Below, piece by piece: positions 882 through 31,831 of a stretch of DNA of 64,000 nt. Position 1 is the first letter of the stretch. Every line of letters begins with the position of its first letter. The translations under genes were made by a program, and so were the position numbers. The notes under the pieces are model-generated. The model did not search any database. It saw only the letters and a list, made by a program, of their open reading frames with translations, and was not told the origin of the DNA. This stretch comes from Diplonema japonicum (Eukaryota > Protista > Euglenozoa: Diplonemea), in contig OZ025738.1 of NCBI GenBank assembly GCA_964019335.1, forward strand, positions 62,001 through 126,000, read 5' to 3'.

Positions 882-3800
882 AGTGGCCCCGCGAGGTAAA
901 GTAAAAAGAATAAGAGGGAAGGAGGGAAGGGGGGAGGAGGAAGACATTCTTTTCTTTCAGTAAGAAGTTTTTTCTTCTTCTCCTTTTTAAGGAACGTTGG
1001 TTCTTAAAAAAAAGGGGGGGGGGGCGGGGGGGAGAGAGAAAATCCTTCGTTCGCTTGCGAACTAAACCTAAATAAAACGATAAGATTATAAATGGCGGCC
1101 TGTTTTAGGCATCCATCTCCAAAAAAAAAAAAACGTTGGTTAAAAATACATAAATAAATAGAAAAGAAACTCTTATAGCCCATCTTCTTTCTTTGTTTCT
1201 CCGGTCTTCTTAGGGCAGGAAATCTTTTTCTGGGTACCTCGCATAAGCAGTTCGCGACATATCAACATCCCAAGAGCCCAAAAGGTACCAAGTGCCCTTG
1301 GAACCGAGAGTATTACAACTAGTTCTCCTACGCACGGATTCTTAGACAAGCAAAAAAAGAAAAAAAAAAAACCCTTGTACATAAAAATCAACTAACAGGC
1401 GCTGGAGTCTTTGTTTTAGAAATAGAGAAAAAAAGAATATAAAAAAAAAAACATAGTGCAGTATTACGGTATGTTGAAAAAAAAAGAACCTTTGGGGAAA
1501 ATACTGAAACGGGTCCAGAAAATGCAACTTAACCATCTATCAACGAGCGTCTATATATAGACGATTTGAAAAAAATCTTTTACGCAAAGGGCTTTCAATG
1601 CAATACGGCCCGGCCCTTTCTTGCCGGCGGGGTCCTGCGCGGAAAATATGAAAAAAATAAACTAAATGCTGCCCTAACTTAACAAGAAAATGAAAAAATG
1701 AAAAAAAACGCCAGCCCAAATTTACCCTTAAAAATCACTTCAAAAAAAAGCGCCCGGAAAGAGGCTGGAAGAGGACGTTATGAGTGATGGCAGCACTGAT
1801 GGCTCATCCCTATTATGCAATTTTGATACAAACAGTGATTCTGATACGAATTCGACCGATTCCGAGTCACAGCAGGGTGATTGGACGGCAAAGCCGGAGC
1901 AGTTGGAAGGCATCCGGTTTCGTGAAGATCGAAATCCTTGTGGACCCTGTTTTGACATCAAAGGCTCAATGCCATACCATATATTCTCCAAATGCTCGTC
2001 CCAAACGTTATTCGGGTCATAACTTCGAACAATGTGGCAAATGCGGCTAAAAAAGGTGTCTCCCTGGATCTCGATGCTGCTTCTCTGCATACCTTCCTAG
2101 GTGTCCTTTTGTCGATGGACTTGGATATCAAGCCAGATTATTCTGATCACTGGCTCCACGTCTCTCAACTACACCCCTGGGTACGCCACCGTCATGTCAA
2201 GAGACCGCTTTTTGACTATTCTGGGAAATCTGTGTTTCCACAGCGAAACAAACAAGCGTGCTGACTTCTACTTATCGCAAAGGCCTCCCGGAGATCATGG
2301 ATGCCCCAAAGAAGCGAGGCCGCATGCCAAGGACGCTCATCCCGTGGGGACACCCAGTTCCACCAGCACGCGAGCATCCTTTGCACCACAACGTGGCATG
2401 ACATCATGCCAGCGTGCTTTCTATCGACGTTGGATGTTCCGGTGAAGTCGAATTTGACGTGTCCGCCAAAAGAGAATGAAAGCCGGAAAGGACATCCCGC
2501 CCCCCACCAAGTGCATATTTACAACACCGCAATGGGCGGAACCGACGCTGGGTGATGCTGTGACAAAACGCCATAAACGCTCCCTTATGACTTAAAAGTG
2601 GCCCCTAAAAGAGTATTTTTGTACTTGTTTGTTTTTTGTATCCCCTCTCGGGCACTTCAGGAACGATATTTTTGACAATGTTGTGGGGGTGGACCCTGCT
2701 GTGGGCACCCTCTCTCTAGAATTGGGACATCTGGAGGCATTTCCGGGGGCATATAGCCCCGGCGTTGCGCTGGAATAGCTTTTTTTGAAGTTTTGAAAAT
2801 TTACCCCCTGGTGGGCAAAAATGGTCCGTTGGTAGATGGTTAAGTTTAGATGCTGGTTCCTTAGGTATAACATTTACCGTAAAATAGCCGTAGACGGAGA
2901 GAGGGAGAGAAAGAGAGGGAAAGAGAGGGAGAGAAATAACTTCAATAGAACCGAGTGTTCCCGTCCAGCACGTATGGGTACTTCTCAAGCCAAGAATGGC
3001 GATTCTGCTTTCTTTTTCTGAAAAACCGAACCAACTTAACCTCATTGGGATTACACTCCTTCCCTCCCCGACAAAAATAAAATAAAATAATTACGATCGA
3101 GAAAAAAAAATTAAAAAACAACCACCACCCCCCCTCCCCCCGACTTGTACATTATTCTTAATCAGACACTATTCCTCTGCCGCGTTGATGGTGGGCACGC
3201 TCACACTCACCTCCTCCACCATCGTGACGCGCTTCGTGAAGTACCACTCGCATCTTGTCTCGTGCCAGTCGGGCAGGCCATACTGCTCACTCCAAGCAGA
3301 TCTCGATCTCCAGATGTACGCCTTCCCTCCAGCAAGTGCTACAAGTGTCTCTTTTTGCTTCTCCACATATTCAACATGTTCGAGAAGCTCTTCGCTCTGC
3401 TCAGCAGCAACCTCTTCCTTCAGGACACGCTTCCCTTCTTCGCGCATCGTCTTTGCCTCTTGTTCCCGCGTCTTGTCATGTTCCACAGCGTCATTACACC
3501 TGTCACCGATCCTCAGCTCAAGTGCCTCAAAGCCTATATCCCCAACCTCGTAGTGATAAGCTTCTTTTTCTTCTAACTTCTTTCCCATTCTCTGACGCTT
3601 TGCTTTCAGCGAGAAAGTATCACCCTCCCTTGTCAGACCTAGCACCGCCGCAAACTTCGCCTTCTGATACAAACGGCTTGTCGCACCCAACTCCTGGTTG
3701 CGGACAATGAGGTCGAAGGAACCGCCCCCCTCGTCCACAAGGAGAGCCACCTTGTTCCCTGACTCTGACACTGCCACCCTGCTGATCGTTCCCAGAGAGA

Positions 3801-6800
3801 AGGGGGCGGCGCTCGGAATAGCCATGCTTATCACCGCATTGTTCTCCCCGACGAGGATGCAGTGAAGGTGCGTCTCTGATAAGCGGACATCCTTCACGCT
3901 GTTGACGTGCAGGTCAAGGCTTCTCGTGTACAGCCTCTTTGCCGTTTCGCGTTGCACAACCCAGCTGTGGATGGACAGGCCGTCCTTGCTCACAACAGAC
4001 ACCACGTCGTTGGAGGTGGTCGCCGTCGCAGGGTCGATGTCCGTGTCGATGTAGAAGGTGCTGTGTTTTCGCAGCGTCCTCGTTTCTTCAGGCAGTGTGA
4101 ACACGCTGCACTCCCACCGCTTTTGTGTATCTCTGCGCCATGCCAGCACCTTGTCCACCATCGGTGTCACAGCCGACCAGACAGGGTTCTGTTCGATTTC
4201 CTCGTGCTTGTACGGATAAACCTGCTCCACAGTTCTTCTTCTATCTGACGAAACACCAGTCAACAAACTGTTAGCAGAAGGATAGTCTTCCTTGACCTCC
4301 ACAATGCCAGCATGCAGCACACCAGCTTTTGTCACCCAGCATATGCCCATGTCCTTATCAGTCTTAATTATGCACATGCTTTTGGCGTTTCCTAGGCTGC
4401 TGTCTTCTATTCCTTCCTTCATTCTTAACCTCGTGTTCAACATCCACACCATCCCATGGTCGGTGATGCCTATGATCCTGCTGGCCGCAAGTGTGCTTGT
4501 GTTGCACTCCTCTACCTTTGTCGCACGATTGTTCTTCATGTTCACGTCCACCACGTGAGGAATGCCACCCGCTACCCAGGAAACGACAAGAACGACGAAC
4601 CCGTTCCTCCACACAATTCTGCTGTGAACGCTGGAGCTGCTGACACTGTCTGGGATCTTCTGGGAAAACACAATGTCCTCACCTCCGAACCTCACCCTGT
4701 CACGGTACACCTCAGCAACATAGTCCTCGTCACTGCGACGCGTCATGGCAGCAAAGGACACCAAGCCGGGCAAGGGGCGTGAAGTCACCTTCATCTTTCC
4801 ATCTGCACCGAATTTTCCAAGGTGCGCCCTGGGGTGGCAAGTGTCCTTCAAGTCATCCTCATTAAGCAGCGTCCTATCGAATGTGTTGTCATCAAGGTGT
4901 GCCCCCTTCACGCTGACCCCACGCAAGTCCATCCCAGCAAAGGCCTCGTTTGCTGCCGACAGGATCGTCATCGCCACAGCACCAGGAACCTTGCAGAACT
5001 TTAGCTTCGACAGCTCCAAAAGGGAGTACAGAGTGTCCTTGAAACACTTCTCCGACGCCATCTTCGCCACGTACTGCCGTAAAACCACAGGAAAGCACAT
5101 CAAGTACTCCATCTTCACGTCCCAGTCCGCACATGCTGCATTGCACGTCTGAACAAGGTACTCGGAGGCCTGCTGCTCCGACACATCAAGGGCATCCGCC
5201 ACCCTCGCTTGCATCACATGACACTCCTTGCTGAATAATACACGCACCTGTTCTTCGTGTGTTAACTCCTCCTTCTGTTTCTCGTTCAGATTCGAGAACG
5301 TCGAAACGAAGAACCTCGTGGCGCAGCGGTTCAGCGGGAACTCCATGAGCTTGTCGCGGATGGCCCATGCTGTGAAAGCGTACTGAAGCCACATGTCGAC
5401 AAAACGGAACGTCTTCTTCCCCGACGGACCCAGCACTGTCCTGAGAGGGGACGAGGCGTACATGTCACGAACGAACTGCATCCTGCGCTCTTCTTCAAGG
5501 TCAAAGGTGCTGAGATCGCACTCTTCGAGGAATAGGTCGCACCTCTTATGGTAGTGGGCGATGGTCGTCTGCTGACGTGCCATCTGAAGCGCAAGGGAAC
5601 CATTGTAGTCAAACATGAGGGTCATGATGTTCCTGTCGCTCATGCTGGGGTACTTCTCGTAGAACATGTCCTTCGAGAGCATGAAGTACCTTTCTACGTT
5701 GCTTCTGAGGAAACTCAAATCAAGGACCGGCTCCTCACACAAGTTGCACATGCAGTCGCTTGTCACGTCTCTAAAGGAACGAACCAATGAAAGCGACAAA
5801 ACGCTATCATTCGCTCCCAGGTATTTCATGAACTTCTCGAATACCCGCCTCTGCCACACCGTGGCCTTGCCAGACACGATTATGCCCTCAGCTTCCTCAG
5901 TGGTTAGGTCCTCTATCCTCAGAACCTGGCACCTCGACATCATCTTTCCGTCCTTGTCGACACTCCCGAACAGTTTCTGGTGTGTGTACTGCAAGAATGC
6001 CACGTTCGCAGAGACAAGAATGATGGGGTCGCCCCATTCGCTTAGAGCATTGGACTTGCGCAATATGTTAAAGGTAAACTCCCTGTCGAGGTGCGAGTAC
6101 CCTTCGAGGATCAACACAAGCTTATAATCTTCACCGCTTTTCTCCTTCAACTTCCTGATGTTGCTGACGGTGAACCCGTATTCCTTAAGAGCCCCTTCCA
6201 CCAGCTTCTCCCTTGGATCCTTCAGCTTTGGCAAGTATATGAACACGGGGACAAGAATTTGTGCTGTCTCTTTTCCCTTTTCTTCCTTTTTGTCTTTGTA
6301 ACACTCCCACAGCCTCTTCTCCACAAGCCGAAGGAACTCTTCGCAGCCGCTCTGATTCCCGTCGAACACAAAGCTGTTGTCCTCTTCATGATTCTTCCAA
6401 CCAAGGATCCTCTTCACAAACATATCCACGGTTTCAGTTTCTTTTTCTTTAGTTGTGTTGTCGCTGAAGGAGACCTTCAAAAATGAGTATTCGTCGGTAC
6501 GCTCACATTGATGCTTCATACGCAGGATGTCATCCTCCAGCTCCCTGTGCAGCTCCAGGTACTCGTGAATATCGCTGACATCCTTCGCGATGTCCTGGAC
6601 AGCCTTCTCAATCTGTACTGCCCTGTTCAGAATGCCTGCGGTGAGAAGCATTGTGGCCCCCACCATTGTGCTTGTCCCCTCCAGGTTCCTTACGTACACG
6701 GTGATCGCCCTCTGGGCATTCTGTAGGATCTTGTCTAGGGGCTTAATTGCTTCCTTCATCACGGTCTCTCCTCGGAGTCTCAGCAGCTCGTCTACCTCGT

Positions 6801-8541: not shown

Positions 8542-8702
8542 CTTTTCTCTTCTTTTTTCTTTTCTTTTTTCTCTCGTTTTTTCTTTTGTCCTCCCCCTCT
8601 CCCCTTCCCCTGATTATGTGGCTTCTTTGGTGCAAAATTAAAAACAAACAAAAAAAAAGGAGGGCTTTGTTAATTAACGCAAAAAAAAGAAGAAGAAAGA
8701 AG

Positions 8703-9305
8703 AATGACTTTGGTTGCTTATAAACCGCCTGGCGTACAAGCAACTGCAGGCGCAGTCTACTTGATTACAGGGGGTGCTCCTCGGCCGAGCAGTAGCTTCT
8801 TCTGCGTTCCGCGCTGTGTCCTTAATGCGTGGTGTTCTCCTCCATGTCCGCTACCAGCACTGACAAGAGAGTTGATGAGGACCGCTGACAAGGGGCACCC
8901 TTGTAGAATGCCATTTGTCACTTCAAAGGCGTCTCCCACTCCATTAGGAAGTGACAGGTTGGCGTGAACGTGTCGTGGTCCCGCTATGCATAAGCGTAGT
9001 CCTAGTTCCTCAACCAGCCTCAGGGATAGCTCCTGTGGCACTGTATCGAAACATTTTTGGAAATCTACAGCGACCCCATGTAACTGTAATCCTCCAAGTA
9101 TTGCTGCTTCAACCGGTGTCAGTTGCATAACAAAAGAATAACTCGTCGACAGCTCAGCGAGCACATCATCACAGCCATGGCCTGGTCGGAACCCGTGCCG
9201 GAATGCTATCCCTTATCCACTTTTCCTGCCAGAAGAGCACTCCCTTCAGCCTCACGCATGCCCACAATCTATATACGACACTTGTGACTGTGATCGGCCT
9301 GTGGT
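8703..9305 (-). mobile_element. Degraded LINE reverse transcriptase fragment joined to a LINE-like 3'-end repeat
   Basis: DFQKCFDTVPQ and NGILQGCPLSAVLIN, plus frameshifted RPITVTS/HGFRP remnants, all homologous to the RTs at 50-61 kb. Confidence 0.9.
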
Positions 9306-10533
9306 AACTGAAATGGTTTTAAGTTAGGATGAAGAAGCGAAAAAATAGGTAAAAAGGGGGGGTGGAAAAGAATAAATACTGCATACGAAAACAGAGAGTC
9401 GAATAAAAGAGGGAAAAAGTGACTGACATCCTCAAGAGGAGCCTCCCACGTACCAGGAATTAAGCAGAGGTTGCTTCCATGGCCCGTATCATCGCCGGAA
9501 AGAATAATGAAAATAACGGAACGAAGTGAAGTAGGAAAAGAGAAAAGAGGCCTGTGGTAAAGAATTAGGATGAAAGGCACGACTTCTTTTGCACAATAAT
9601 GGCACAAGAGGCATAAAGCGGGGCTAATGCGGTGCTGCGAGTAGGGTCGCACCCCCGATGCCTTGCGTCTTCACCAGAACGGTTTGTATCGAGACCTTTT
9701 TGACCTTGGGGAGCCCACTGCTACGGGTGGAGTCTGCTGAATCGCTAGCATTGCCATAACGGTCGCCCGAGGGAGAGCAGCCTCACACACGGTTTTCCCT
9801 GCTTTAACATAGTGCACGTAAACCCCTTTCCCGCCTTTTGTACCGATCCCAACAAATGCCACATAAAGCCCTCCTCTATAGAACTCGAACCCGGGAAACA
9901 TGTGATAATTGGGTACGAAACAGTGATTTGTTGCTGATGCAGTTCAAGACTGAAACTCGAGAGGAAAGGAATGTGAGTAGCTCACCCTAAAGTCTAAAAA
10001 CAACAAAAGGAGCGCCCCTCGTGAAACTATTAAACTATGATGAGGTGGGAGGAAAACGAGAATGAATGGGGATGGGGATGAAACTGGGGGGGAGCCGGGA
10101 TGGTCAGGACTTACTTTACAGGACTTCCAATACCATGTGGCCGGTATTGGACCTTCTGAAAAGTTCTTTGTACCCAAAAGGGGGGAAGAAGAAGAAGAAG
10201 AAGGAGAAGAATATCCGGGGTTTTTGTTCCTGAGGGTGCCGCTCCTCAGTACCCTCTGTTTCTTGTCAAATATATAGGGGTGGGTATGTGGGGGCTTTTT
10301 TTCTTTCACACTTTTCATTCGCTCCCAGCTGCCTTGATCGGCTTTGCTACGTCGGCGGGATGGTTCTTTTTTCTTTTTCTTTCTGCGAGAAACAGGATCG
10401 TTACAGGAACGTTATTATCTGTTCTTCACGCCATCGAGCTGTTCGTTCATTTCTTTCTCTCTTTTTCACAACACAAGAAAAAGCAGGAAAATATCTACAC
10501 GTGCACGGGGGAAAAGATTCTACAACTCACGCT

Positions 10534-19600: not shown

Positions 19601-22600
19601 GCGTCGTCAGACTGGAAATGAAGCAACCGACATTCTTGGAAACAAAGTCTGCTAAGTGCGACCGCTCTGTTGAGTGCTGGAGCCAGCGAATCTGCATACC
19701 TTCCGACTTGTTATCCCGCTGATCCTTCTGATCAAGACAGCCACTACTGTTCTGCTGCGTGTGCTCTTGTATTATCTGTACGCCCATGACGTCCTCTACC
19801 TGAAGACGTTCCTGTAGTACACTTAATAACCCCTCCTCCTCCTCAAGACGCTGCTCTATGTTGCCTCGAGCCTGCGTGCGACCAAGATAGCTACCCCATG
19901 AGGTCAAGCGGTCTATCGTCCGGAACTCCTCCACAGCTACTTCTTTGAGCTGTTTCCACAAGACCTCGGAGTACTCTTCAGCCGTCTTGTCAGCCTTGAG
20001 AACGCTGTCGCTTGTCCCGTCTCTAAAGGAACGAACTAATGAAAGCGACAAGACACCTTGCCTTTCGGGGTCAAGATTCGTTCCTAGGTATTTCATGAAC
20101 TTCTCGAAGACCAAGGAGACCTTGAGCATCTGCCACACCGAGGTCTTGCCAAACTCAATGATGCCCTTAGCTTCGCCAGTGTCTAGGTCTTCTATTCTCA
20201 GAACCTGGCACCTCGACATCATCTTTCCGTCCTTGTCGACACTCCCGAACAGTTCCTGGGGTGTGTACTGCAAGAATGCGACGTTCGCAGAGACAAGAAT
20301 GATGGGGTCGCCCCATTCGCTTAGAGCATTGGACTTGCGCAATATATTAAAGGTAAATTCCCTGTCGAGGTGCGAGTACCCTTCGAGGATCAACACAAGC
20401 TTGTAGTCCTCACCGCTTTTCTCTTTCAGCCTCCTGATGTTGCTGACGGTGAACCCGTATTCCTTAAGAGCCCCTTCCACCAGCTTCTCCCTTGGATCCT
20501 TCAGCTTTGGCAAGTATATGAACACAGGAACAAGATCTTGTGCCGCCTCTTCTTCCTCTTCTTTCTTTTTGTCTTTGTAACACTCCCACAGCCTCTTCTC
20601 CACAAGCCGAAGGAACTCTTCGCAGCCGCTCTGATTCCCGTCGAACACAAAGCTGTTGTCCTCTTCATGATTCTTCCAACCAAGGATCCTCTTCACAAAC
20701 CCATCCACGGTTTCAGTTTCTTTTTCTTTAGTTGTGTTGTCGCTGAAGGAGACCTTCAAAAATGAGTATTCATCGGTACGCACACGATGATGCTTCATGC
20801 GCAGGATGTCATCCTCCAGCTCCCTGTGCAGCTCCAGGTACTCGTGAATATCGCTGACATCCTTCGCGATGTCCTGAACAGCCTTCTCAATCTGTACTGC
20901 CCTGTTCAGAATGCCTGCGGTGAGAAGCATTGTGGCCCCCACCATTGTGCTTGTCCCCTCCAGGTTCCTTACGTACACGGTGATCGCCCTCTGGGCATTC
21001 TGTAGGATCTTGTCTAGGGGCTTAATTGCTTCCTTCATCACAGTCTCTCCTCGGAGTCTCAGCAGCTCGTCTACCTCGTCCAAGAGTTCTGATATCTTTT
21101 TCTTGTACTCTTTCGCCTGCGTGGGGAGGGTCATCCCCATGTAGTCCTTCATTCCTTTGAAAGACAGCGCCTCGTGGAGAGCTCCGACCACCTCTTCGCG
21201 ATCGCACAGTAGTGAGCGCGACAGCTGCTCGCTCACATCGTGTTTCTGACTGTCTGTCAGGTACCTGCCGTCCTCGAAGGCGATGACCTCGTAGCACGCC
21301 ATCACAGACCTGCACCGCAGCTTCAGCGAGGTGTTTGAGCTGGTGTCTTTGCCCAGCAGCAGGTCCGTCATTGCGGAAACAGAACCATCGATACTCTCCA
21401 GACTCTGCCCACTCTGCCCTCTTGTATCGTTGTACCACTGGTCGATCTCTCTTATGAACTCCACTGATCCCTTACCGGCCTTTTCCGCCTGATATTTCAC
21501 GGCGCCTCCTACAAGCTCTTTCGCATCCTTGATTTGCTCGGTGAGCTTCTCTGGGGACGGCCTCTCGAACGTCAAAAACTCCAGCAAGCAATCCAACAGG
21601 ACATCGGTTGCTGTTGCTGGGAACTTAACGGTGTGCGTTGCTGCTGGGTCGTTCTCAACCGGGATGCGCTGGTACCACTTCTGGTCGGCCTTACCGTAAG
21701 ATATCCTGCCGGTCCAGTCCCCTGCGGAGCGGACGACAGCACGGTTGAAAAGCAGCATTTCAGCCAAGTTTGCGATCCACAGCAGGGCGTGGGTGGGGTC
21801 GGCGTGCTTGAGGCTACCATCATGAATGACATCCTCGTGGAACGACTTAATGGCTGATGTAATGGTTTCCGCAAGACGCAGGCAGTCACCGTCTCGTTTT
21901 CTATCGGTGAGGGCCTGTACTGTATTCCGCAGAAGCTCGCACTTCACGCCGAGGGTGAAGCACTCGTAGGTGGAGAACGTGATGAACCCTTCTGCCTTGA
22001 CCTTTTCTATGATGCTTTCGATGACCTTCTTTCCGTCCTTTAAAAACTCTCCTACCTTTGAAATGGACCCAGGTAAGCCGGTAGCTATGCTGAAAACGGT
22101 TCCCCCGAACTTACAAATGGACTCTATGAGCTCATTGTCTGACTGTCCTATGACCTTCACTCCAACAGACACGATGTGGAAGTCGGTGATGGATACGACA
22201 TGGCGGCGGGCCTCGTACTTGACCTCCTCCAATTCCTTGACAAGGTTCTCCAGCTTCTTTTCATTGTGGTCCTCTGGTGGGGTGGTCTTTGCAAGGCGGA
22301 ACATGAGGAAGGCAGCTGAACGGTGCAGGTGTATGTTGTTGAAAGTGATGAGCTGCCGTTTGTCGCTCTCCATCGTGTCGGACATGAGGGAGATCTTCAG
22401 AATCTTGAGGATACCGTACACGGCCTCGTAAAGACCTTTCCATTCCTCTTCTTTAAAGGGCTTCTGCTCGACCCCAAACACATGCTCTTGCATCTTAAAC
22501 CACTTCACAAACTCTTGTGTTGCCACCCACTTGTCCCATTGTGCTACGTCCCCTCCATACCACGCCTCTTCTAGATTCGCCAGCTTCCTTGAAAGGTCTT

Positions 22601-22670
22601 TCTTGAACTCTGAATCGATGTCACCCTCACTGATGCGGAACAGCTTCTTCAGAACATCCTTGATTTTCAT
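16623..22670 (-). CDS. NLR-like protein B, 2015 aa
   Basis: Near-identical to protein A but with a different N-terminus and an extra 266 aa (19210-20007). Confidence 0.75.
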   Translation of the reverse strand: MKIKDVLKKLFRISEGDIDSEFKKDLSRKLANLEEAWYGGDVAQWDKWVATQEFVKWFKMQEHVFGVEQKPFKEEEWKGLYEAVYGILKILKISLMSDTMESDKRQLITFNNIHLHRSAAFLMFRLAKTTPPEDHNEKKLENLVKELEEVKYEARRHVVSITDFHIVSVGVKVIGQSDNELIESICKFGGTVFSIATGLPGSISKVGEFLKDGKKVIESIIEKVKAEGFITFSTYECFTLGVKCELLRNTVQALTDRKRDGDCLRLAETITSAIKSFHEDVIHDGSLKHADPTHALLWIANLAEMLLFNRAVVRSAGDWTGRISYGKADQKWYQRIPVENDPAATHTVKFPATATDVLLDCLLEFLTFERPSPEKLTEQIKDAKELVGGAVKYQAEKAGKGSVEFIREIDQWYNDTRGQSGQSLESIDGSVSAMTDLLLGKDTSSNTSLKLRCRSVMACYEVIAFEDGRYLTDSQKHDVSEQLSRSLLCDREEVVGALHEALSFKGMKDYMGMTLPTQAKEYKKKISELLDEVDELLRLRGETVMKEAIKPLDKILQNAQRAITVYVRNLEGTSTMVGATMLLTAGILNRAVQIEKAVQDIAKDVSDIHEYLELHRELEDDILRMKHHRVRTDEYSFLKVSFSDNTTKEKETETVDGFVKRILGWKNHEEDNSFVFDGNQSGCEEFLRLVEKRLWECYKDKKKEEEEEAAQDLVPVFIYLPKLKDPREKLVEGALKEYGFTVSNIRRLKEKSGEDYKLVLILEGYSHLDREFTFNILRKSNALSEWGDPIILVSANVAFLQYTPQELFGSVDKDGKMMSRCQVLRIEDLDTGEAKGIIEFGKTSVWQMLKVSLVFEKFMKYLGTNLDPERQGVLSLSLVRSFRDGTSDSVLKADKTAEEYSEVLWKQLKEVAVEEFRTIDRLTSWGSYLGRTQARGNIEQRLEEEEGLLSVLQERLQVEDVMGVQIIQEHTQQNSSGCLDQKDQRDNKSEGMQIRWLQHSTERSHLADFVSKNVGCFISSLTTRQLEAVVGFLTDCRLPRFDSDLQCIADRFEKCLDSILLRCKEDSSDINYLRSCISVFGRLKILLEVFKDGGRGGLHGVYDILSGPVSHSIVIAIVKTFHSHTGTFTFGKLDKVNAFRNSPSSSALHKTIRSCMYDLCEEPVLDLSFLRSNVERYFMLSKDMFYEKYPSMSDRNIMTLMFDYNGSLALQMARQQTTIAHYHKRCDLFLEECDLSTFDLEEERRMQFVRDMYASSPLRTVLGPSGKKTFRFVDMWLQYAFTAWAIRDKLMEFPLNRCATRFFVSTFSNLNEKQKEELTHEEQVRVLFSKECHVMQARVADALDVSEQQASEYLVQTCNAACADWDVKMEYLMCFPVVLRQYVAKMASEKCFKDTLYSLLELSKLKFCKVPGAVAMTILSAANEAFAGMDLRGVSVKGAHLDDNTFDRTLLNEDDLKDTCHPRAHLGKFGADGKMKVTSRPLPGLVSFAAMTRRSDEDYVAEVYRDRVRFGGEDIVFSQKIPDSVSSSSVHSRIVWRNGFVVLVVSWVAGGIPHVVDVNMKNNRATKVEECNTSTLAASRIIGITDHGMVWMLNTRLRMKEGIEDSSLGNAKSMCIIKTDKDMGICWVTKAGVLHAGIVEVKEDYPSANSLLTGVSSDRRRTVEQVYPYKHEEIEQNPVWSAVTPMVDKVLAWRRDTQKRWECSVFTLPEETRTLRKHSTFYIDTDIDPATATTSNDVVSVVSKDGLSIHSWVVQRETAKRLYTRSLDLHVNSVKDVRLSETHLHCILVGENNAVISMAIPSAAPFSLGTISRVAVSESGNKVALLVDEGGGSFDLIVRNQELGATSRLYQKAKFAAVLGLTREGDTFSLKAKRQRMGKKLEEKEAYHYEVGDIGLEALELRIGDRPLPCAACDKTREQEAKTMREEGKRVLKEEVAAEQSEELLEHVEYVEKQGKTLVALAGGKAYIWRSISALSEQYGLPDWHETRYKWYFTKRVTMVEEVSVSVPTINAAEE

Positions 22671-23829
22671 CTTTCTCTTTTTTTCTTTCTTGTTGTTCCT
22701 TCTGGCTTTCTACGTGATGGCAGTGCACCAAACATGGAAGAAAAAAGGGAAAAAAGAAGGGGGAAAAAAAAGGGAAAAAAAAATAGTTCCGGCACATTAT
22801 TCCATTTGTCTGTTTGTGCTCGTGTTGCGAAAAACCACAAATCCTGCCTCCGACACTGTTAAGTGTATCAGTGCCTTCTTTCAAATCGATGCATTCTAGT
22901 TTCTTCGCATATATACAGTCTTTTACGAACTACCTGTTGGCGGTACGTTAATCTGACGACCAATAGAAGAAAGACTGGTCATCGAACTCGATGGCTTCTA
23001 GTTTTCCGCACCCCTGACAAGATGTGATCAACGGAAAGAGCTTTTGGGAGGGATGAGATGGACTCACGACAGGTGGTGGCACCCATAAGAAACCTTTAGT
23101 TCCTGCAACTGAACGCTTCTCATGTCTGCCCCCACATGGACCATGGAGCCCAAGTTCCTGAAGCTCTTCACCGCCGCTGACCTCTCCCTCCGTGTAAACC
23201 AGCAGCACACCCCGCCTTCTTGTACACCGCCTCCTTCCCTGACACTTCCACATCGTGAACCCCGCTCTTCATGAAACCTTCCTGTTACAGGCTCCCACTG
23301 CCTCCTTCCCCAACGACTGTTAGATCGTTTCATCAGATTTTGCTTTTGCCCCCCCCCCCCCCTCCCCTAGGGCTATACTGGCAAGAAACGGGGCAACGTT
23401 TCCATTTCCGTTTCCTTATTCTTCAGATACCTAAGGATACGCGCCCCTTCTTAAGGAACCCAAAGTAAGGAAACGTTTCCGTTCCCCTTCCTTATCTTCA
23501 AAAAAGTGCTTGGAAACGCGTTTCTTGCCAGCATAGCCCTCCCCCCCGGGCCCCTGTCATGTCGTAGTGCCCGTCTGGCATGTCGGACTCCATGTGCTCT
23601 GCCGTGAGCGGGAGGTTCGAACGCTTCGAGGGCTTTTGCGTCTGGCGGTGGCAGTCCAGATTCCAGATGCCGCTCGGCCGAGTAATCCTTATCCAACTTC
23701 TCAGCGTACATCGCCCGCAGCTCTGCGCGCGTCTCCTCGCCGATCTCGTCGAAGATGCCGCCGAGGCTCCCCGACACCTCAAGGAGCTCCATAGCGAAGC
23801 CGACATCTTTCTCCGGGGGGGGTGTTCTT

Positions 23830-24030
23830 CACGCGCGTAAGCAGCACCATGTCATCTTCAGCAAGGCACCCGATTGGGCTGCACACCAGCAGGTTCAGCG
23901 GCGTTACCTTGTTGGACGATGAAACGTGATCCGTTGCAGAGACCAGCTGGGGGTTAAGGTTTTTGAAGAGTATCGGTGCCCCAACCTTTAGCCGTAACTT
24001 CTGGAGTGGGACCCCCGTCGTGATTATGAG
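23830..24030 (-). mobile_element. Helitron/PIF1-type helicase fragment (frameshifted)
   Basis: TGVPLQKLRLKVGAPI..KNLNPQL, then after a shift LCNGSRFIV, matching the LxLKVGAPxMLLRNL..GLCNGTR helicase motif. Confidence 0.75.
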
Positions 24031-24775: not shown

Positions 24776-27700
24776 TCACCCAGGGTTGACATTCAGTTTA
24801 GCTAATGCTTCCTCAACCCTTATCGGTAATTCAATGTCCTTGGGCATGGGTTGCCGCATCTGACAAACTCGCAAGTTGTCCGGCTTATCAAAGGACACGT
24901 ATTGAGGTTCGGGTGCGGACAGCCCTGGAAGCACCTCTATAGCAATACGACGTATTGTGACCCTGTGTGTGACTATCATGGGGAACGGCTCCCATATCAC
25001 AAGCTCGCCGCTGCTGCTCCTCAAAGACTGGTAGCCATCACCAATTAAGTCGCGAAAATGGTCGGATTCTTGATTCTCCGCCGGCAGTTCTTCCTCGTGC
25101 TTTGTGTGCACGCACGTCGCGACGCCTGTCAGAATTGTCGTTCCTGAACTCAGCTTATCCAGATTCGCACTAGTCAATTCCATTACCTTAGCCCATTGTA
25201 GTGGTTGCCTCCCACGAATTCTGATATTGACGGCATCCTTCTCCACCTCGACGTAGAATGGCACCCGTGCTACCTGTGCGAGGGGTCGCTTCCATACGTC
25301 TTTAATGCTCTCCGTGAGCACACGGAAGTTCATGACAACGGTCTCTTCGTTCTTGCTGAATGCTTCCAAATGCGTTTTGAAGTCGGGTTCTAAGGTCAGG
25401 TCCGTGACATCGCTCTGCTTACTGAAGGCAGGATGCAGCGTCAAATGCTTGGCGGGTATGGCAGCAATACTCTCAATTGAGCAGAGAGGGCAGTCCGTTG
25501 GTATGCCCACAGAACACTGCTTGAGGCTAAGCTCATGACCCTTGCTGCACCGCCACTTCGATTCAGAATCACATCCTAATGTGCCAGCACTGAGGTGGCA
25601 TTCAAGAAGGATCTCGTGCTTGCAGGCTCTCACGTTCCAGCACTCGCGCGGTACCAACTCACAGCACTTGATATCAAGGCGCGCTGCCGCCTTGTTCTTA
25701 CATGGAACATGCGTGTGGCCGCAAGGCAGCCGAGTAGGGACAGGTTCATAATAGATAGCGGCTGCGCTCACACTCACCTCCTCTACCGTTGTGACGCGCT
25801 TCGTGAAGTACCACTCGCCCCCCGTCTCGTGCCAGGAGGGCAGGTCATACTGCTCTGTGATGGCACACCTCCATCTCCAGACGTATAAGTCAGTGCCCAC
25901 AAGTGCAACCAAAGTCCTCCCTTGCATCTTCACGTCTTTGATCTCCTTGCCCATCGACAGCAATTCTCTTGACACGGATGCAGTCTCGGCATGCAGCACT
26001 TTCATCCTTTCCGTTGTGCGGGCCTTCAGCTTCCTGGTCAGTGAGTTTACCTTTACTTCGGTCTGCACTTCGTGCTCACTTATCGTCACTGTGCTGGCAC
26101 CTTCGTCGGAGAGCTCGGTTTCATTCTCTTCTTCTTTGCGGCCGTTTCTAATATCCAGAGAGCCGAGGCCTATCTCACCCACATCGAAGAGGTACGTCTC
26201 TGTGTCTCCCATCGACACCGTCAGTCTGAACAGATTGGCCTCGTCATTCCACTCCACATCATGAACCGTGTGCTTCACCCTTTGGTATAGACGGCTCGTC
26301 ACGCCTGTCCTCTGGTCGCGGACAATGAGGTCGAACACCTTCGCTGTGCTGTCGCAAACAAGGATCGCGACCTTAATCCCGTCGGCAGACAGGGCTATCT
26401 TGCTGATGGTGCCTGAGAAGGGCGCGCGGCATGGAACGCGCATGCAGACGTAGCCGCTCGTATCCTCAATGAGGCAGTGCACGTTTGCATCGGAAACCTG
26501 CACACAACGCACGGGCTTCTCGAAGTGCTTTGTGTACAACCTCTTCGACGTCCAATCTTGCAAGTCCCAGCTGTGGATGTTGCCGCTGTCATCACCCACA
26601 GACACCACGGAGTCAGACGTGGCAGCCAATGTGGGATCGATGTTATGGTGCGTGTAGAAGGCGCAGTAGTCGTGGAGCGTCCCACTCTTGCTCAGCAAGA
26701 AAACGCAGCATTCCCACCTGTCGTCGTCCGTCATGCGCCAGGCCAGCACCTTGTCCTTCATTGATGTCAGTGCCTTCCAGTCGCCATGTTGTCGGTCTCG
26801 TTCGAATAGGTGTCCGTCAACCACAATACCTGCGTGAAGTCTGTCTGCAACCCAGCAGACTCCGAATGTGGAGTCCGTTGTCTGAAACATGCACACGTGG
26901 CTGGCGTCTCCCGCGGATCTGCCTGCGTCGAGCCTGGTCACCCTCTCGTGATCGGATATCAATGCCTGGGAATTCTCGATCGTAGATTCTCCACCGCTGT
27001 TCACCACCTCATACTTTATATGACCGTAGCTTGGCTCACGTTCTCTTGCGTCCTTGTTCTCCAACATCCACGCGACCCCATGGTCGGTGATGCCTATGAT
27101 CTTATGGATGTCGCTCACCGACAACGATTGGCATGTTTCCGAAACACGTGCTGTTATGTTTACAACGTATGCAGTGCTTGTCGCCTCCTCCACCCAGGAA
27201 ACGACTAACATTAGGAACCCGTTCCTCCACACAATTCTGCTGTGAACGCTGGAGCTGCTGACACTGTCTGGAATACCGTGGGAAAACACAATGTCCTCAC
27301 CTCCGAACCTCACCCTGTCACGGTACACCTCAGCAACAGTGTCCTCGTCACTGCGACGCGTCATGGCAGCAAAGGACACCAAGCCGGGCAAAGGACGTGA
27401 AGTCATAGTCACTTTTCCATCTACTCCGATCTTTCCAAGGTGCGCCCTGGGGTGGCAAGTGTCCTTCAAGTCACCCTCGTCAAGCAGCGTCCTATCGAAT
27501 GTGTTGTCATCAAGGTGTGCCCCCTTCACGCTGACCCCACGCAAGTCCATCCCAGCAAAGGCCTCGTTTGCTGCCGACAGGATCGTCATCGCCACAGCAC
27601 CAGGAACCTTGCAGAACTTTAGCTTCGACAGCTCCAAAAGGGAGTACAGAGTGTCCTTGAAACGCTTCTCCGTTGTCAACTTCGTCACGTACTGCCGCAG

Positions 27701-30700
27701 CACTATGGGGAAGCTCATCAAGTGTTCCATCCTCACGTCCCAGTCCGCACATGCTGCATTGCACGTCCGAACAAGGTACTCGGAGGCCTCCTGCTCCGGC
27801 ACACCAAGGGCATCCGCCACCGTTGCCCGCATCACACGTCGCTCCTTGCTGAATAACGCACGCACCTGTTCGTATGATACGCCCCCTGGTATCTCGTTCA
27901 GCTTCGAAAACTCTGCAACGAAGAACCTCGTGGCGCAGCGGTTCAGCGGGAACTCCATGAGCTTGCTGTAGATGGCCAATGCTGTGAAAGTGTACTGGAC
28001 CCATCTGTCCAAAAAGCAGTAAACCTTCTCGGCACCATCCATCTGCACTGTCCTAAGAGGAGATGCAGTGTACAAGTCACGGACGAACTGCTTCTTGTTG
28101 TTTTCGACTTCTCCGTGGAAGAAGTCGCACCTCCTTTCATAAAGGCCTGTGGTGGTGTGCCGACGTGCCATCTGCAGTGCGAGGTTCCCGTTGTACTGGT
28201 GCAGTTCGGTGACGAAGTCCTTGTCGCTCATGCTGGGGTACTTCTCGTAGAACATACCCTTCGACAGCTTGAAGTACTCACTGAAGTCCATTGACGCGAG
28301 GCCGATGGTCTCGTCGCAGAGGCAGAATATGCACCCTCTGATCACGGAACACAGCGCACTGTCGTTTGACCCTTCCCCCACCACGATGTCGATCAGACCA
28401 CGAATCGTGAACTTTGGCGAAAGCGACAGGAGCATATCTTCGGCCGATAGAGCTATCTCTGCAAGAGGCCCGAGAGGCTCCTCTTCATCCCCCATCTCGA
28501 ACTCATCGAGCTCCTGCTTTCTGATCCCCTTGGCAAGCTTTCTGAGAATATCAGTCGGAATCTCAAGACGCTCATAGATGCTGACTAGCGCATCCCTCTC
28601 CCCGAACTTGTACACCGCGGATAGTATTCGTAGACTGCTGAAGACATAGATACACGACAATAGGAACTTTCGGTTCTTTATACGTTCACGAGCTTCAAAC
28701 ACGAGGCGGCTCAATATTCCCATGTGAGCGGATCGTCCTGGGAGGACCCTCTCCTGCTGCCTGTTTGCCCTTGCGCACAGCTTCTGCCTACAGTGGCTCA
28801 CGACAGTCGTGCAGAGCCCCCCGATCATAGTCATGACGTCATGGAGGTCGGGGCAGTCGGGTACCTTCTGCTTGAGTAACGACCTCACCACGTCGCGCTG
28901 CCCGTCTGTCAGATTCTCGGCGAAGTCACAGATCATCTTTGTGACGTTGGAGCAAACTGTATTGGCACGCCCTGCATGCCTTTCTTTCTGTTCTAACGCT
29001 GCCGTGAACTGCGGATTAACATGGCTGGCAACCTCTACAAGCCTTTCCCTAGCCCAGTCGATCAGCTCCTTCCACGCATTGTTGACGTGCTCCGGAGTTC
29101 CTGCTGGACCACGCGTGACCCAGTAGGCCCTTGCTGCAGCGTCCGCCATTCTGACGTAACCCCTGTTCCCATGAACAAACGCTCGCAGCAATGCGAGAGT
29201 CATGTAGTTGCACTGTTTTGGACGAAGGCTCTTAATCACGTATGTCGTGTACCTCTGAAATAAAAGTGTGGCCCTGAGCTTCTGCCACACTGAAGTGCAG
29301 TCTGCATGCATCACATGCATGATGTCATCCATGGACATCTCTGCCATCTCTAAAATACGGCACTCGGAAGTGAGTTTCCCGTTCCTGTAGTTCCCGAAGA
29401 TCTGCTGAGGTGTGTACTGCAAGACGTCGGTGTTCGCAGACACAAGTAGGATGGGGTCTCCCCACTCGTCCATCGCATTGCTCGTCTTGATGCGGTGGAA
29501 GGTGAACTCCTGGTTGAGTTGTGAATAGCCCTCGAGGATGAGTACTAGCCTGTACGCGCCACTGTTTGCTTCCTGCTTCAGCTTTCTGATGTTCCTAGCT
29601 GTAAACTTATGCCTCTCAAGACCTTCTTCAATAAGCCTTTTGGAAGGGCTCTTCAGCGCAGGTAGGTATATGTGTAAAGGCACAACAGTTATGTCGCTGG
29701 GGGGCTCGCACCACAGGCTCTTCTCCACCAGCCTCATGAACTCTTCACAGCCCCTGTGGAGCCCATCGAACACAAAGCTGTATCCAAAATTATCTTCCTT
29801 CTTCCTCTGGCTCAGCTCGTGTATATGCCTTGAAAACTCCGTAACGCCATACGTCACCTTTCTGTCCACTCGCTCAGTCCACTCCTTCGCCCTCCGCAGC
29901 TTCATGGTCGTCTGGATGGCCTTTAGAACCGAGTACTTCTCAAAGTAGGCTGCAAGCTCGCACCGCTTTGTCTTCATTGCTTCGATGTCATCGTCTAATT
30001 CCCTGTTCAGCTCCAGGTACTCGTGAATATCGCTGACATCCATCGCGATGTCCTGAACAGCCTTCTCAATCTGTACTACCCTGTTCTGGATGCTTGCGGT
30101 GAGAAGCATTGTGGCCCCCACCATTGTGCTTGTCCCCTCCAGGTTCCTTACGTACACGGTGATCGCCGACTGGGCCTTCTGTAGGATCTCGTCTAGGTGC
30201 TGAGTTGCCTTCTTCATAACGGAGGTTCTGCGGTGTTCTAGCAGCTCGTCTACTTCGTCGAGTAAGCTGGTCAGCTTCTCCTTGTACTCCTGGGCCTGTG
30301 TCTTCAGGGTCATCCCCATGTAGTCCTTCATTCCTTTGAAAGACAGCGCCTCGTGGAGAGCTGCGACCACCTCTTCGCGATCGCACAGTAGTGAGCGCGA
30401 CAGCTGCTCGCTCACGTCGTACGCCCTGTCACCGATGTTTCGCCCGTCTTCAAAGGCAAGAACCTCGTAGCACGCCATCACAGCCCTGCACCGCAGCCTC
30501 ACAGCATCCATTAGAGTCTCCGTGTCGCCATCTTCAGTGTTCCCTAGAAGAAGCTCAGTCACGCTGACAACCTCCTCCTTTACCTTGCGAAGAGCTTCGT
30601 CGTCCCAGTCACTGATCTTCTGTGCGAATGCTGCCGTGTCAACTGACTTGACCCCCATCTTCTGCTCACTCACGGCGACGAACATGAGATCCTTCGACTT

Positions 30701-31831
30701 CTCAATGCACTTTGTGAGGTCCTCGGGCGACGGCCGCTTGTATTTCAGCAGCTCCAGCAAGCAGTCGACCATTGCGCTCTTTGCCTCTTGTGGGAAGGTT
30801 ACGATGCGTTTGTCGCCGTCGACCGGTATGCGCTGGTACCACACCTCATCCCCGGGGATCCTGCCCGCAGTGACGTCCGCGGACCTTGTGACTGCTCTCT
30901 TGAACAGAAGCATCTCAACCAAACACTCCGCCCACAGCATGGCGTGGCGAGCATCGAGGAAGGCAGCCGCAGCACCGTCCGAAGAAGACTGAACACTGTG
31001 GAAAGAGGCGATGCTCTCGGCCAGCTTACTACCAGAGTCGGAGGGAACGGCGGAAGGAAATATCTCACTCATCAGCAGCTGGTGCTTCAGAGCGAGGGCA
31101 AACCGGTCGTAGACAGCACAACCCCTGAATTTCTCCGCCTCGCATCTCATGGAGACTGCGTCAAACGCCTTCTTACCCTCCTCTAGCACGGTCATGAGAC
31201 TGTCGAAGCCAGGTGATGCGGCAGCGCTTACGAAAGTTGCACCGAAACTCAAGGCAGTGTTTGTAAGTGCGTTGTCTGTTATGCCTTGCTCGCCAACGAT
31301 GTTGACCCCGTTTCGAAGGACGAGCGCGTTGCTGGCTGACACAGGATGGGTGTGTGCGATGTATCTCTTTTCTTGGAGCTTTTCGATGAGGACCTCCAGG
31401 GCCTCCTTTTTACATGGGGTGGGGGGGTCTGTCACCGCGAGTCGGAACATGAGGAACGCAGCTGCACTGTACAAACGGATGTTGACGAATGTTAGAAACT
31501 GCCTACTGCCGTCGTCCTCACCCCCGTTCAGGAGCGACTGCAAAAGCACCTCAAGGATGCTGCACAGTGCAGAGTACAGCGACTCCCAGTCTTCAGCGTT
31601 CTGGTGCTCCAAGCTATGCCCGAAAAGCTGTTCTTGCATTTTGAACCATTTGACAAAACCTTGCGCCACGGCCATTTTGTCGTGAAAGGAACAGTCGGCC
31701 TCCCATTGCCGGGTGAGGACCTGCTGCCTCTCCTTGAGCTCCTTTTTGAATTCATCACTTGCAGATACCTTCCCAGGCCCACAGAGGGAGAGAACACATT
31801 CTATGCACTGCTCCAAAGACGGTAGACTCAT
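24776..31831 (-). CDS. NLR-like protein C, 2351 aa, with a C-terminal NF-X1-like Cys/His-rich extension
   Basis: Colinear with A and B (FVFDGLHRGCEEF, LILEGYSQ, identical pentapeptide block). About 320 extra C-terminal aa beginning PTRLPCGHTHVPC...CSKGHEL..C...CPLC. Confidence 0.75.
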   Translation of the reverse strand: MSLPSLEQCIECVLSLCGPGKVSASDEFKKELKERQQVLTRQWEADCSFHDKMAVAQGFVKWFKMQEQLFGHSLEHQNAEDWESLYSALCSILEVLLQSLLNGGEDDGSRQFLTFVNIRLYSAAAFLMFRLAVTDPPTPCKKEALEVLIEKLQEKRYIAHTHPVSASNALVLRNGVNIVGEQGITDNALTNTALSFGATFVSAAASPGFDSLMTVLEEGKKAFDAVSMRCEAEKFRGCAVYDRFALALKHQLLMSEIFPSAVPSDSGSKLAESIASFHSVQSSSDGAAAAFLDARHAMLWAECLVEMLLFKRAVTRSADVTAGRIPGDEVWYQRIPVDGDKRIVTFPQEAKSAMVDCLLELLKYKRPSPEDLTKCIEKSKDLMFVAVSEQKMGVKSVDTAAFAQKISDWDDEALRKVKEEVVSVTELLLGNTEDGDTETLMDAVRLRCRAVMACYEVLAFEDGRNIGDRAYDVSEQLSRSLLCDREEVVAALHEALSFKGMKDYMGMTLKTQAQEYKEKLTSLLDEVDELLEHRRTSVMKKATQHLDEILQKAQSAITVYVRNLEGTSTMVGATMLLTASIQNRVVQIEKAVQDIAMDVSDIHEYLELNRELDDDIEAMKTKRCELAAYFEKYSVLKAIQTTMKLRRAKEWTERVDRKVTYGVTEFSRHIHELSQRKKEDNFGYSFVFDGLHRGCEEFMRLVEKSLWCEPPSDITVVPLHIYLPALKSPSKRLIEEGLERHKFTARNIRKLKQEANSGAYRLVLILEGYSQLNQEFTFHRIKTSNAMDEWGDPILLVSANTDVLQYTPQQIFGNYRNGKLTSECRILEMAEMSMDDIMHVMHADCTSVWQKLRATLLFQRYTTYVIKSLRPKQCNYMTLALLRAFVHGNRGYVRMADAAARAYWVTRGPAGTPEHVNNAWKELIDWARERLVEVASHVNPQFTAALEQKERHAGRANTVCSNVTKMICDFAENLTDGQRDVVRSLLKQKVPDCPDLHDVMTMIGGLCTTVVSHCRQKLCARANRQQERVLPGRSAHMGILSRLVFEARERIKNRKFLLSCIYVFSSLRILSAVYKFGERDALVSIYERLEIPTDILRKLAKGIRKQELDEFEMGDEEEPLGPLAEIALSAEDMLLSLSPKFTIRGLIDIVVGEGSNDSALCSVIRGCIFCLCDETIGLASMDFSEYFKLSKGMFYEKYPSMSDKDFVTELHQYNGNLALQMARRHTTTGLYERRCDFFHGEVENNKKQFVRDLYTASPLRTVQMDGAEKVYCFLDRWVQYTFTALAIYSKLMEFPLNRCATRFFVAEFSKLNEIPGGVSYEQVRALFSKERRVMRATVADALGVPEQEASEYLVRTCNAACADWDVRMEHLMSFPIVLRQYVTKLTTEKRFKDTLYSLLELSKLKFCKVPGAVAMTILSAANEAFAGMDLRGVSVKGAHLDDNTFDRTLLDEGDLKDTCHPRAHLGKIGVDGKVTMTSRPLPGLVSFAAMTRRSDEDTVAEVYRDRVRFGGEDIVFSHGIPDSVSSSSVHSRIVWRNGFLMLVVSWVEEATSTAYVVNITARVSETCQSLSVSDIHKIIGITDHGVAWMLENKDAREREPSYGHIKYEVVNSGGESTIENSQALISDHERVTRLDAGRSAGDASHVCMFQTTDSTFGVCWVADRLHAGIVVDGHLFERDRQHGDWKALTSMKDKVLAWRMTDDDRWECCVFLLSKSGTLHDYCAFYTHHNIDPTLAATSDSVVSVGDDSGNIHSWDLQDWTSKRLYTKHFEKPVRCVQVSDANVHCLIEDTSGYVCMRVPCRAPFSGTISKIALSADGIKVAILVCDSTAKVFDLIVRDQRTGVTSRLYQRVKHTVHDVEWNDEANLFRLTVSMGDTETYLFDVGEIGLGSLDIRNGRKEEENETELSDEGASTVTISEHEVQTEVKVNSLTRKLKARTTERMKVLHAETASVSRELLSMGKEIKDVKMQGRTLVALVGTDLYVWRWRCAITEQYDLPSWHETGGEWYFTKRVTTVEEVSVSAAAIYYEPVPTRLPCGHTHVPCKNKAAARLDIKCCELVPRECWNVRACKHEILLECHLSAGTLGCDSESKWRCSKGHELSLKQCSVGIPTDCPLCSIESIAAIPAKHLTLHPAFSKQSDVTDLTLEPDFKTHLEAFSKNEETVVMNFRVLTESIKDVWKRPLAQVARVPFYVEVEKDAVNIRIRGRQPLQWAKVMELTSANLDKLSSGTTILTGVATCVHTKHEEELPAENQESDHFRDLIGDGYQSLRSSSGELVIWEPFPMIVTHRVTIRRIAIEVLPGLSAPEPQYVSFDKPDNLRVCQMRQPMPKDIELPIRVEEALAKLNVNPG

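Follow-up and report, generated by a model that had tools for sequence, protein, structure and literature searches.

A Diplonema japonicum gene cluster of NACHT-type STAND paralogs with degenerate NTPase motifs and an interposed ADP-ribosyltransferase-ankyrin gene

A stretch of 64,000 nucleotides of Diplonema japonicum DNA (hereafter the window; C91:62001-126000) was analysed, with emphasis on positions 3169-31831, where three large paralogous genes, denoted A, B and C, are found together with a gene for an ADP-ribosyltransferase (ART) followed by a long array of ankyrin repeats (ART-ankyrin). Comparisons of the encoded proteins demonstrate, at the level of sequence, that A, B and C form part of a clade of STAND proteins of the NACHT type in which the NTPase motifs are dead. 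Genome-wide searches were performed on the D. japonicum assembly of 62.5 Mb and 132 contigs (G000). The large open reading frames (ORFs) of the window are all on the minus strand. The original prediction described three paralogs of 1.8-2.35 kaa; we find A, B and C to be intact and on the same strand. The features of the locus are as follows.

3169-8541, minus strand: paralog A, an intact ORF of 1790 residues with an alpha-solenoid N-terminus, a pseudo-NACHT nucleotide-binding domain (NBD), a shortened helical region, a pentapeptide segment and a beta-propeller region
5755-6429, minus strand: pseudo-NACHT NBD of A (residues 705-929), from alignments, hhalign and the alpha/beta core of the AlphaFold2 (AF2) model (pLDDT 65-83)
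4777-4956, minus strand: pentapeptide-repeat segment of A (residues ~1196-1255), aligned to the Pfam Pentapeptide match of the paralogs L021 and L022
3172-4776, minus strand: all-beta C-terminal region of A, a predicted beta-propeller from the AF2 model and VIA-align, to which sequence methods are blind
10534-14583, minus strand: exon 2 of the ART-ankyrin gene, 1349 codons, with the ART domain at ~13918-14343 and 25 ankyrin repeats at ~10564-13296 (Pfam and repeat analysis)
14584-14625, minus strand: intron of the ART-ankyrin gene, 42 nt, GT..AG, read from the sequence; exons 1 and 2 are in frame across it
14626-14901, minus strand: exon 1 of the ART-ankyrin gene, 92 codons from the ATG (translation); the same relative position is kept upstream of ~20 copies
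16623-22670, minus strand: paralog B, 2015 residues, with the NBD at 19971-20708, the segment absent in A at 19284-20000 and the pentapeptide segment at 18231-18410
24776-31831, minus strand: paralog C, 2351 residues, with the NBD at 29123-29869 and a Cys-rich C-terminal extension at 24779-25774
8831-9554, no strand assigned: two short dispersed repeats of ~475 bp and ~250 bp in the spacer between A and the ART-ankyrin gene; copies 80-96% identical on many contigs
23349-23547, no strand assigned: dispersed repeat of ~190 bp in the spacer between B and C; copies of either orientation, 75-88% identical, on more than 40 contigs

The identity between A and B is 94-96%, and B has ~229 extra residues (B 891-1129). 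Paralog C is 45-51% identical to A and B, and alone carries a C-terminal extension, of ~325-332 residues. This Cys/His-rich extension did not match any Pfam family even at an E-value of 10, and no second copy was found in the genome. An NF-X1/ZNFX1-like label for the extension was considered and dropped, as Pfam gave no support for it at E 10. None of the three proteins gave a direct Pfam match at E 0.01, and at E 10 the N-terminus gave none either. The family membership was obtained from the paralogs elsewhere in the genome. In total, 13 full-length members were found (A, B and C plus at least 10 others of 2100-3000 residues); the others are located on contigs C96, C81 (three), C62, C60 (three) and C103 (two), and fragments are present on C81 and C86 (N-terminal ones at C86:408-415 kb). 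A further family copy with a dead P-loop, at C95:53758-56093, has in-frame TGA and TAG stops and is probably a pseudogene. The two members on C103, L021 and L022, keep Walker A (GKSGSGKST) and Walker B (ILDSYNE) and score above the Pfam cut-offs for NACHT (33.3 and 28.2 bits, cut-off 26.7), Pentapeptide (42 and 39 bits, cut-off 20.2) and WD40 (38 and 34 bits, cut-off 27). A profile built from the 11 degenerate NBDs aligned to L021/L022 with hhalign at a probability of 97.5% (E 5e-12), the alignment spanning Walker A, Walker B and a conserved WG motif. The NBD alignment contains 33 invariant columns, and the pentapeptide segment of A, B and C corresponds column for column to the Pfam Pentapeptide match of L021/L022. 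With L021/L022 as the transitive link, sequence and model together place A, B and C among the STAND proteins, on the NACHT side by sequence. L021 itself (1120-8565, equal to C103:71119-78564) has an OTU cysteine-protease domain between the solenoid and the NACHT domain (28.3 bits, cut-off 23.3, residues 845-918); its sister L022 is without it.

Relatives outside the species were collected with a profile of the STAND module, which retrieved 2962 proteins from a library of 1.84 billion representatives. The best matches outside D. japonicum came from metagenomes, the green alga Cymbomonas (P0008, named in its source as NACHT domain-containing) and the fungi Modicella and Linnemannia, which we take to be members of the Mortierellomycotina. 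Four outside matches were scanned with Pfam: WD40 arrays were present in all four and NACHT scored above the cut-off in one, and one fungal protein had an ARM-like N-terminus. Searches of PDB sequences with profiles of the NBD alignment returned generic P-loop matches only (E 0.03-0.4).

The fold of the module was assessed from an AF2 model of A residues 700-1790, made from an alignment of 17 sequences (mean pLDDT 64.8, pTM 0.36). The model, at moderate confidence, shows an alpha/beta domain (beta-alpha-beta units in model residues 24-177), a helical region (helices in 182-497) with a winged-helix-like hairpin (334-348), and ~540 residues of beta structure. When the model was compared with the PDB by Foldseek, full-length Apaf-1 (5juy, 3sfz, 3j2t, 3shf) gave the best matches, with E-values of 8e-12 to 2e-10 over ~1200 columns, followed by Drosophila Dark (8y6p) and then by tandem WD40 propellers. 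The C-terminal region of A is built in the model from runs of 4-stranded beta units, and VIA-align placed model residues 556-879 on WD40 propellers with Z-scores of 10-11 and root-mean-square deviations of 3.1-3.7 Å over 136-165 residues. No similarity was detected by hhalign between the C-terminal region of the window family and the WD40 part of L021/L022; the beta-propeller of A, B and C is therefore a prediction from the structure model. The layout put forward in the original prediction, a NACHT-like domain followed by a pentapeptide segment and a beta-propeller, is borne out by the Pfam-positive paralogs, the profile-profile match and the structure prediction. The profile and structure searches it had suggested as a check on the STAND fold agree, the former through the hhalign match to the NACHT-positive paralogs and the latter through Apaf-1 and Dark as top Foldseek matches. 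The N-terminus was modelled on B residues 1-640, which form an all-alpha solenoid (pLDDT 71, pTM 0.72). No recognisable effector domain was found in these N-terminal 640 residues in Pfam (to E 10) or the protein Atlas.

Three motifs of the NTPase are altered in the paralogs. In alignments, Walker A of A, B and C reads FDGNQ-SGCEEF, in which the Lys is gone, and G..(W)G.EF in the other eight genes of the dead clade. The Asp of Walker B is changed to Glu in A, B and C (LILEGYS in A) and to Val in the other eight. Sensor-1, canonically TSR or TTR, is SAN in A, B and C (Arg to Asn), and SAN or EAD/AAD across the dead clade. Canonical Walker A motifs are present in L021, L022, L034, L036 and P0006. 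Among the 161 NBD matches drawn from the 150 best outside representatives, the pattern GxxxxGK[ST] was found in 150; of the other 11, 10 start after the P-loop and the eleventh is P0003, a D. japonicum family member. The pseudo-NTPase status proposed earlier thus holds, as the Walker A Lys, the Walker B Asp and the sensor-1 Arg have all been lost. For Walker B the earlier description needs amendment: the canonical Asp is indeed gone, but the motif is not simply absent, having undergone an Asp to Glu change in A, B and C.

A maximum-likelihood tree of the module (midpoint-rooted for drawing only) puts the 11 genes with a dead P-loop on one side of a single branch that has 100/100 support and a stem length of 1.87 substitutions per site, and within them A, B and C are sister to the other eight. 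The tree, with these genes beyond one long and fully supported stem, fits a single loss of the motifs followed by expansion. No member of the dead-P-loop clade was found outside D. japonicum in the collection searched, which in other searches gave proteins of D. ambulator, Lacrimia, D. papillatum and an Hpha-tagged transcriptome. The clade is probably lineage-specific.

Several observations bear on whether these genes are maintained. Paralogs A and B are each 99% identical to a EukProt transcript of Diplonema japonicum (EP01064), namely P0002 and P0001, respectively; overall, full-length transcripts match A, B, the dead-clade member P0003 and L021. In the dead clade, 11 ORFs of 1790-3000 codons (5.4-9 kb) have stayed open although dS, the synonymous divergence, is ~1 between old pairs. 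The ratio of nonsynonymous to synonymous divergence (dN/dS) of old paralog pairs is 0.3-0.5.

The identity between the copies is mosaic. At the nucleotide level, the identity of A and B is 100% across B residues 61-483 and 1179-1898, but only 88-96% across B residues 604-1178, which include the pseudo-NACHT domain. Similarly, C shares with B a tract of 99.4% identity over residues 1390-1449, corresponding to the pentapeptide segment, a block with 100% nucleotide identity between A and B. In the remaining blocks the identity of C and B is mostly 42-65%, a few blocks reaching 72-91%. Such a mosaic is the pattern expected from gene conversion, and it agrees with the recent duplication and domain exchange that had been noticed at first reading. 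The blocks of 100% identity between A and B may alternatively stem from collapse in the assembly; against this, transcripts exist both with and without the 229-residue segment.

The gene between A and B was predicted to encode an ART with a diversifying ankyrin array, and the detailed analysis agrees. Exons 1 and 2 were searched as separate queries. Exon 2 matches Pfam ART (PF01129) with 31.1 bits (cut-off 22.3) at residues 81-222, as well as ankyrin families. The R-S-ExE catalytic triad is intact in the translation, being present as FRA (R135), TSAT and EKEVLI (E206, E208), and these motifs align with TVFRG, TSTS and ERELIL of two further STAND proteins, L034 and L035. The array comprises 25 ankyrin repeats with a period of 34 residues, and the variation falls mainly on repeat positions 1-5, 10 and 13, which make up the usual binding face of ankyrin repeats. 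The variable array probably chooses the substrate of the ART. To the gene as described in the original prediction, an upstream exon of 92 codons and an intron of 42 nt have to be added. Exon 1 has no hydrophobic leader and no match to a Pfam family, and in some paralogs it resides together with the ART domain in a single ORF.

The ART-ankyrin family has ~20 copies in the genome, on C91, C66, C96, C49, C105, C106, C93 and C99, with ART domains 79-91% identical to that of the window copy. Homologs of 43-51% identity were found in Lacrimia lanifica, the Hpha-tagged transcriptome and one metagenome. As judged from these comparisons, the family is separate from the STAND paralogs and conserved across diplonemids. 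Many of the paralogs (on C66, C96, C49, C93, C99 and C105) match exon 2 in two pieces, residues 2-54 and 61-350, that are ~120-130 nt apart. In the window copy and three others there is no such gap, which looks like intron presence and absence among paralogs; the 42-nt intron after exon 1 shows the reverse pattern. That the copies ride on a transposon was considered and rejected: the closest copies have only ~100-200 bp upstream of the ATG in common, and their other flanks are generic dispersed repeats.

In the window, the ART-ankyrin gene is on the same strand as the cluster, 1.7 kb from B and 2.0 kb from A. There is a second adjacency on C96, where an ART-ankyrin copy is located 1.9 kb upstream of the paralog L013, again on the same strand. 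These are the only two of ~20 ART-ankyrin copies that lie within 5 kb of a STAND family member, and the two contigs concerned are two of the eight that carry such members; an ART-ankyrin copy is absent from the other six, including those with the C81, C60, C62 and C103 clusters. Two adjacencies would arise with P ~0.002 under uniform placement of the copies. Given that C91 and C96 have five ART-ankyrin copies each, P becomes ~0.08, which is not significant. The two adjacent copies have 82% identity in their ART domains whereas the STAND genes next to them have ~34%, so that the pairs arose independently and were not inherited together. The original prediction had proposed that the ART-ankyrin protein and its neighbours are paired as sensor and effector or as guard and decoy, and had suggested examining their co-occurrence elsewhere in the genome. 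The pairing is not backed by recurrent linkage (2 of ~20 copies, P ~0.08), and the co-occurrence proved to be confined to the two contigs.

A different connection between ART and STAND domains was found in fusion proteins. L034 (1966-7266 on C102) has ART (26.2 bits, cut-off 22.3), NACHT (27.4 bits, cut-off 26.7), Pentapeptide and WD40 domains in a single ORF of 1766 residues. L035 (1490-6591 on C77) has the same order of ART, NACHT and Pentapeptide, the WD40 domain being encoded in a second, overlapping ORF; either a frameshift or an unrecognised intron would explain the overlap. Homologs with the full ART-NACHT-Pentapeptide-WD40 layout are present in D. ambulator (P0159) and D. papillatum (P0160, DIPPA_31281). 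The P-loops of the fusions are live, and their ART domains are only 28-34% identical to the ART-ankyrin type. For these reasons the fusions tie ART chemistry to this STAND architecture in diplonemids, and not to the particular pair of neighbours in the window. A pathway shared by ART and STAND proteins is plausible given the fusions. For the ART-ankyrin neighbour, co-residence in a duplication-prone region is more likely than an obligate partnership.

Mobile elements and other genes were also noted in the window. The ~250-bp repeat at 9303-9554 has copies of 90-96% identity on many contigs (1361 candidates at first look), and looks like a young SINE- or MITE-like element. The spacer that separates the ART-ankyrin gene from B, to which positions 15779-15814 belong, is of low complexity. 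Two LINE-type elements (endonuclease and reverse transcriptase), with an OTU-like ORF between them, occupy 50165-54250, 55134-56591 and 56800-63296 on the minus strand. The transposon clutter of the original prediction is accordingly found in part: the spacers do contain short dispersed repeats, which are common to many other contigs, but LINEs are present only outside the range of the cluster (~50-63 kb). Also on the minus strand are a ferric-reductase/NOX-type ORF at 42902-44377 (Ferric_reduct, FAD_binding_8 and NAD_binding_6) and, at 47605-48705, a DNase of the TatD type whose N-terminus carries a CCHC zinc knuckle.

We lean, with modest confidence, towards the explanation that the STAND clade with dead NTPase motifs supplies a diplonemid NLR-like network with scaffolds, sensors or regulators that work independently of nucleotide, the ART-ankyrin gene of the window being more likely a co-resident than a partner. 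The clade lost the Walker A Lys, the Walker B Asp and the sensor-1 Arg, apparently once, and then grew to at least 11 intact genes by tandem duplication and gene conversion. Proteins of this kind would be unable to work as NTP-driven switches, and a nucleotide-independent function as scaffold, sensor or regulator would be the most likely one left to them. The canonical proteins that would make up such a network have a live P-loop together with an enzymatic N-terminal domain, an arginine-type ART (in three species) or an OTU domain (in L021 of D. japonicum). The fast evolution with raised dN/dS, the gene conversion, the expansion in copy number and the shuffling of N- and C-terminal domains are indirect signs that would fit a role in conflict or immunity. 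A number of observations weigh against this explanation. PADLOC models of bacterial defence NACHT proteins matched none of L021, L034, B and C, and ankyrin repeats were the only matches. The similarity of the N-terminal 640 residues to ARM/HEAT/karyopherin-like proteins is generic and inside the noise range for helical proteins, so that no effector output can be assigned to A, B and C. The model of the STAND module, with its 17 sequences, is of moderate confidence (see above). The dN/dS of young paralog pairs is 0.6-0.9, indicative of relaxed constraint or diversifying selection, and A may be impaired because it lacks the 229 residues that B has after the NBD. The proximity of ART-ankyrin copies to STAND genes in just two cases counts in the same direction.

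The dN/dS of the young pairs and the residues missing from A would also be expected if the clade were drifting toward pseudogenes after loss of the P-loop, without a selected function, and the copy with stop codons on C95 and the fragments on C81 and C86 would fit such decay. We regard it as very improbable, however, in view of the 11 giant ORFs that are open despite the divergence of the old pairs, the lower dN/dS of these pairs, the 33 invariant columns of the NBD and the existence of full-length transcripts. A functional module of the type originally proposed, in which the dead STAND paralogs sense or scaffold and recruit or release the neighbouring ART-ankyrin enzyme for arginine ADP-ribosylation of targets that the variable ankyrin face would select, would explain why an ART-ankyrin gene is found inside the cluster on the same strand and again next to L013 on C96, with the low probability under uniform placement. 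In line with it are the lack of a recognisable effector domain in A, B and C themselves and the fact that, in three diplonemid species, ART is fused to canonical proteins that share this STAND architecture. We nevertheless consider this module rather unlikely. The other 18 of the ~20 copies lie more than 5 kb from any STAND family member and the clusters on C81, C60, C62 and C103 do without any copy; the significance disappears when the copy density on the two contigs is conditioned on; the pairs have independent origins, as judged from the unequal identities of their ART and STAND parts; and the ART of the fusions is distant from the ART-ankyrin type.

An explanation without immunity is about as doubtful. 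In this case the dead clade would be structural or involved in trafficking, the ART-ankyrin proteins would be unrelated regulatory enzymes, and the clustering would follow from a duplication-prone, repeat-rich region. The structural matches are indeed dominated by solenoid-plus-propeller layouts (nucleoporins, IFT-A, the SSU processome and karyopherins), the NTPase switch, which is the hallmark of STAND signalling, is lost, and the intergenic repeats occur on many other contigs. On the other hand, the clade was found only in D. japonicum among the diplonemids of the collection, and multiple copies, fast evolution, gene conversion and variable terminal extensions are unusual for housekeeping scaffolds. 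Beyond a clade of nucleotide-independent scaffolds, sensors or regulators, one may envisage an undescribed diplonemid NLR-like immune network with arginine ADP-ribosylation as the executioner, in which the dead-NTPase clade of D. japonicum acts in trans with free ART-ankyrin enzymes. We deem this extended scheme improbable; if true, it would represent a split sensor/effector system operating with no nucleotide switch.

Animals, plants, fungi and bacteria all depend centrally on NLR/STAND proteins for immunity and cell death; in Euglenozoa these proteins are, to our knowledge, almost undescribed, nor do we know of an arginine ART described as the N-terminal effector of eukaryotic NLR-like proteins. 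A literature search in a library that is not complete gave no publication about NACHT proteins of diplonemids or of Euglenozoa, in keeping with the earlier statement that no such system was known in this lineage. The present data indicate that NACHT-pentapeptide-WD40 proteins exist in diplonemids, some of them with an N-terminal arginine ART, and that a clade devoid of every NTPase motif has expanded in one species, with its giant ORFs still open and two of them, A and B, matched by full-length transcripts. The dead clade is thereby a natural experiment on what a STAND scaffold can do once its nucleotide switch is lost. D. japonicum carries bacterial endosymbionts (PMC13598402), and these suggest a biological context for experimental work.

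In the model of A 700-1790, the alpha/beta NBD, the helical and winged-helix domains and the beta-propeller follow each other in the same order as in Apaf-1 and Dark. Apaf-1, a dATP/ATP-binding protein of the NB-ARC (AP-ATPase) clade, begins with a CARD. Paralogs A, B and C differ from it in that they are on the NACHT side by sequence, lack the NTPase motifs, have a pentapeptide segment ahead of the propeller and carry a predicted alpha-solenoid of 640 residues in place of a death-fold domain. NACHT-WD40 proteins of the NWD type include the fungal HET-E/HET-D-like NLRs and animal NWD1 and TEP1. The NACHT-WD40 proteins of fungi, algae and animals resemble the diplonemid family in having variable N-terminal domains and C-termini of repeats. 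The window clade is set apart from these relatives by its degenerate Walker A, which is canonical in the 150 best outside proteins wherever the match includes the P-loop, and by a propeller that is no longer recognisable as WD40 by sequence. In the plant sensor NLRs RRS1 and RGA5, nucleotide binding or hydrolysis is dispensable or degenerate, and the role of these proteins is to sense for, or to regulate, a partner with a competent P-loop. By analogy, a dead clade beside live paralogs could work like the plant sensor NLRs, which would serve as a working model. The plant proteins are NB-ARC-LRR proteins, of another clade and with other repeats, and their partner genes are usually arranged head-to-head, whereas no consistent partner gene was found for the window clade.

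The ART-ankyrin gene resembles ARTC-type ADP-ribosyltransferases (PF01129) in its Pfam ART score above the cut-off and its intact R-S-ExE triad; unlike the vertebrate ecto-ARTs, it is without a signal peptide or GPI-type leader. Substrates are usually recruited in this manner, by an ankyrin array beside an ART domain. In tankyrase the catalytic domain is of the PARP type and the domains are in reverse order, and the ART-like domain of Shigella OspC3 is of a different, divergent family. The activity of Chromobacterium CopC and Shigella OspC3, both ART-plus-ankyrin enzymes, has been reported (PMC9239266). The D. japonicum gene is endogenous and intron-containing and is present in ~20 copies. Finally, the antiphage STAND proteins of the bNACHT/Avs type differ from A, B and C, in which neither an effector nor the NTPase motifs can be recognised in the sequence, and resemble the diplonemid ART-NACHT-pentapeptide-WD40 proteins, with which they share the logic of a variable enzymatic effector at the N-terminus, a STAND NTPase and a sensor of repeats at the C-terminus.

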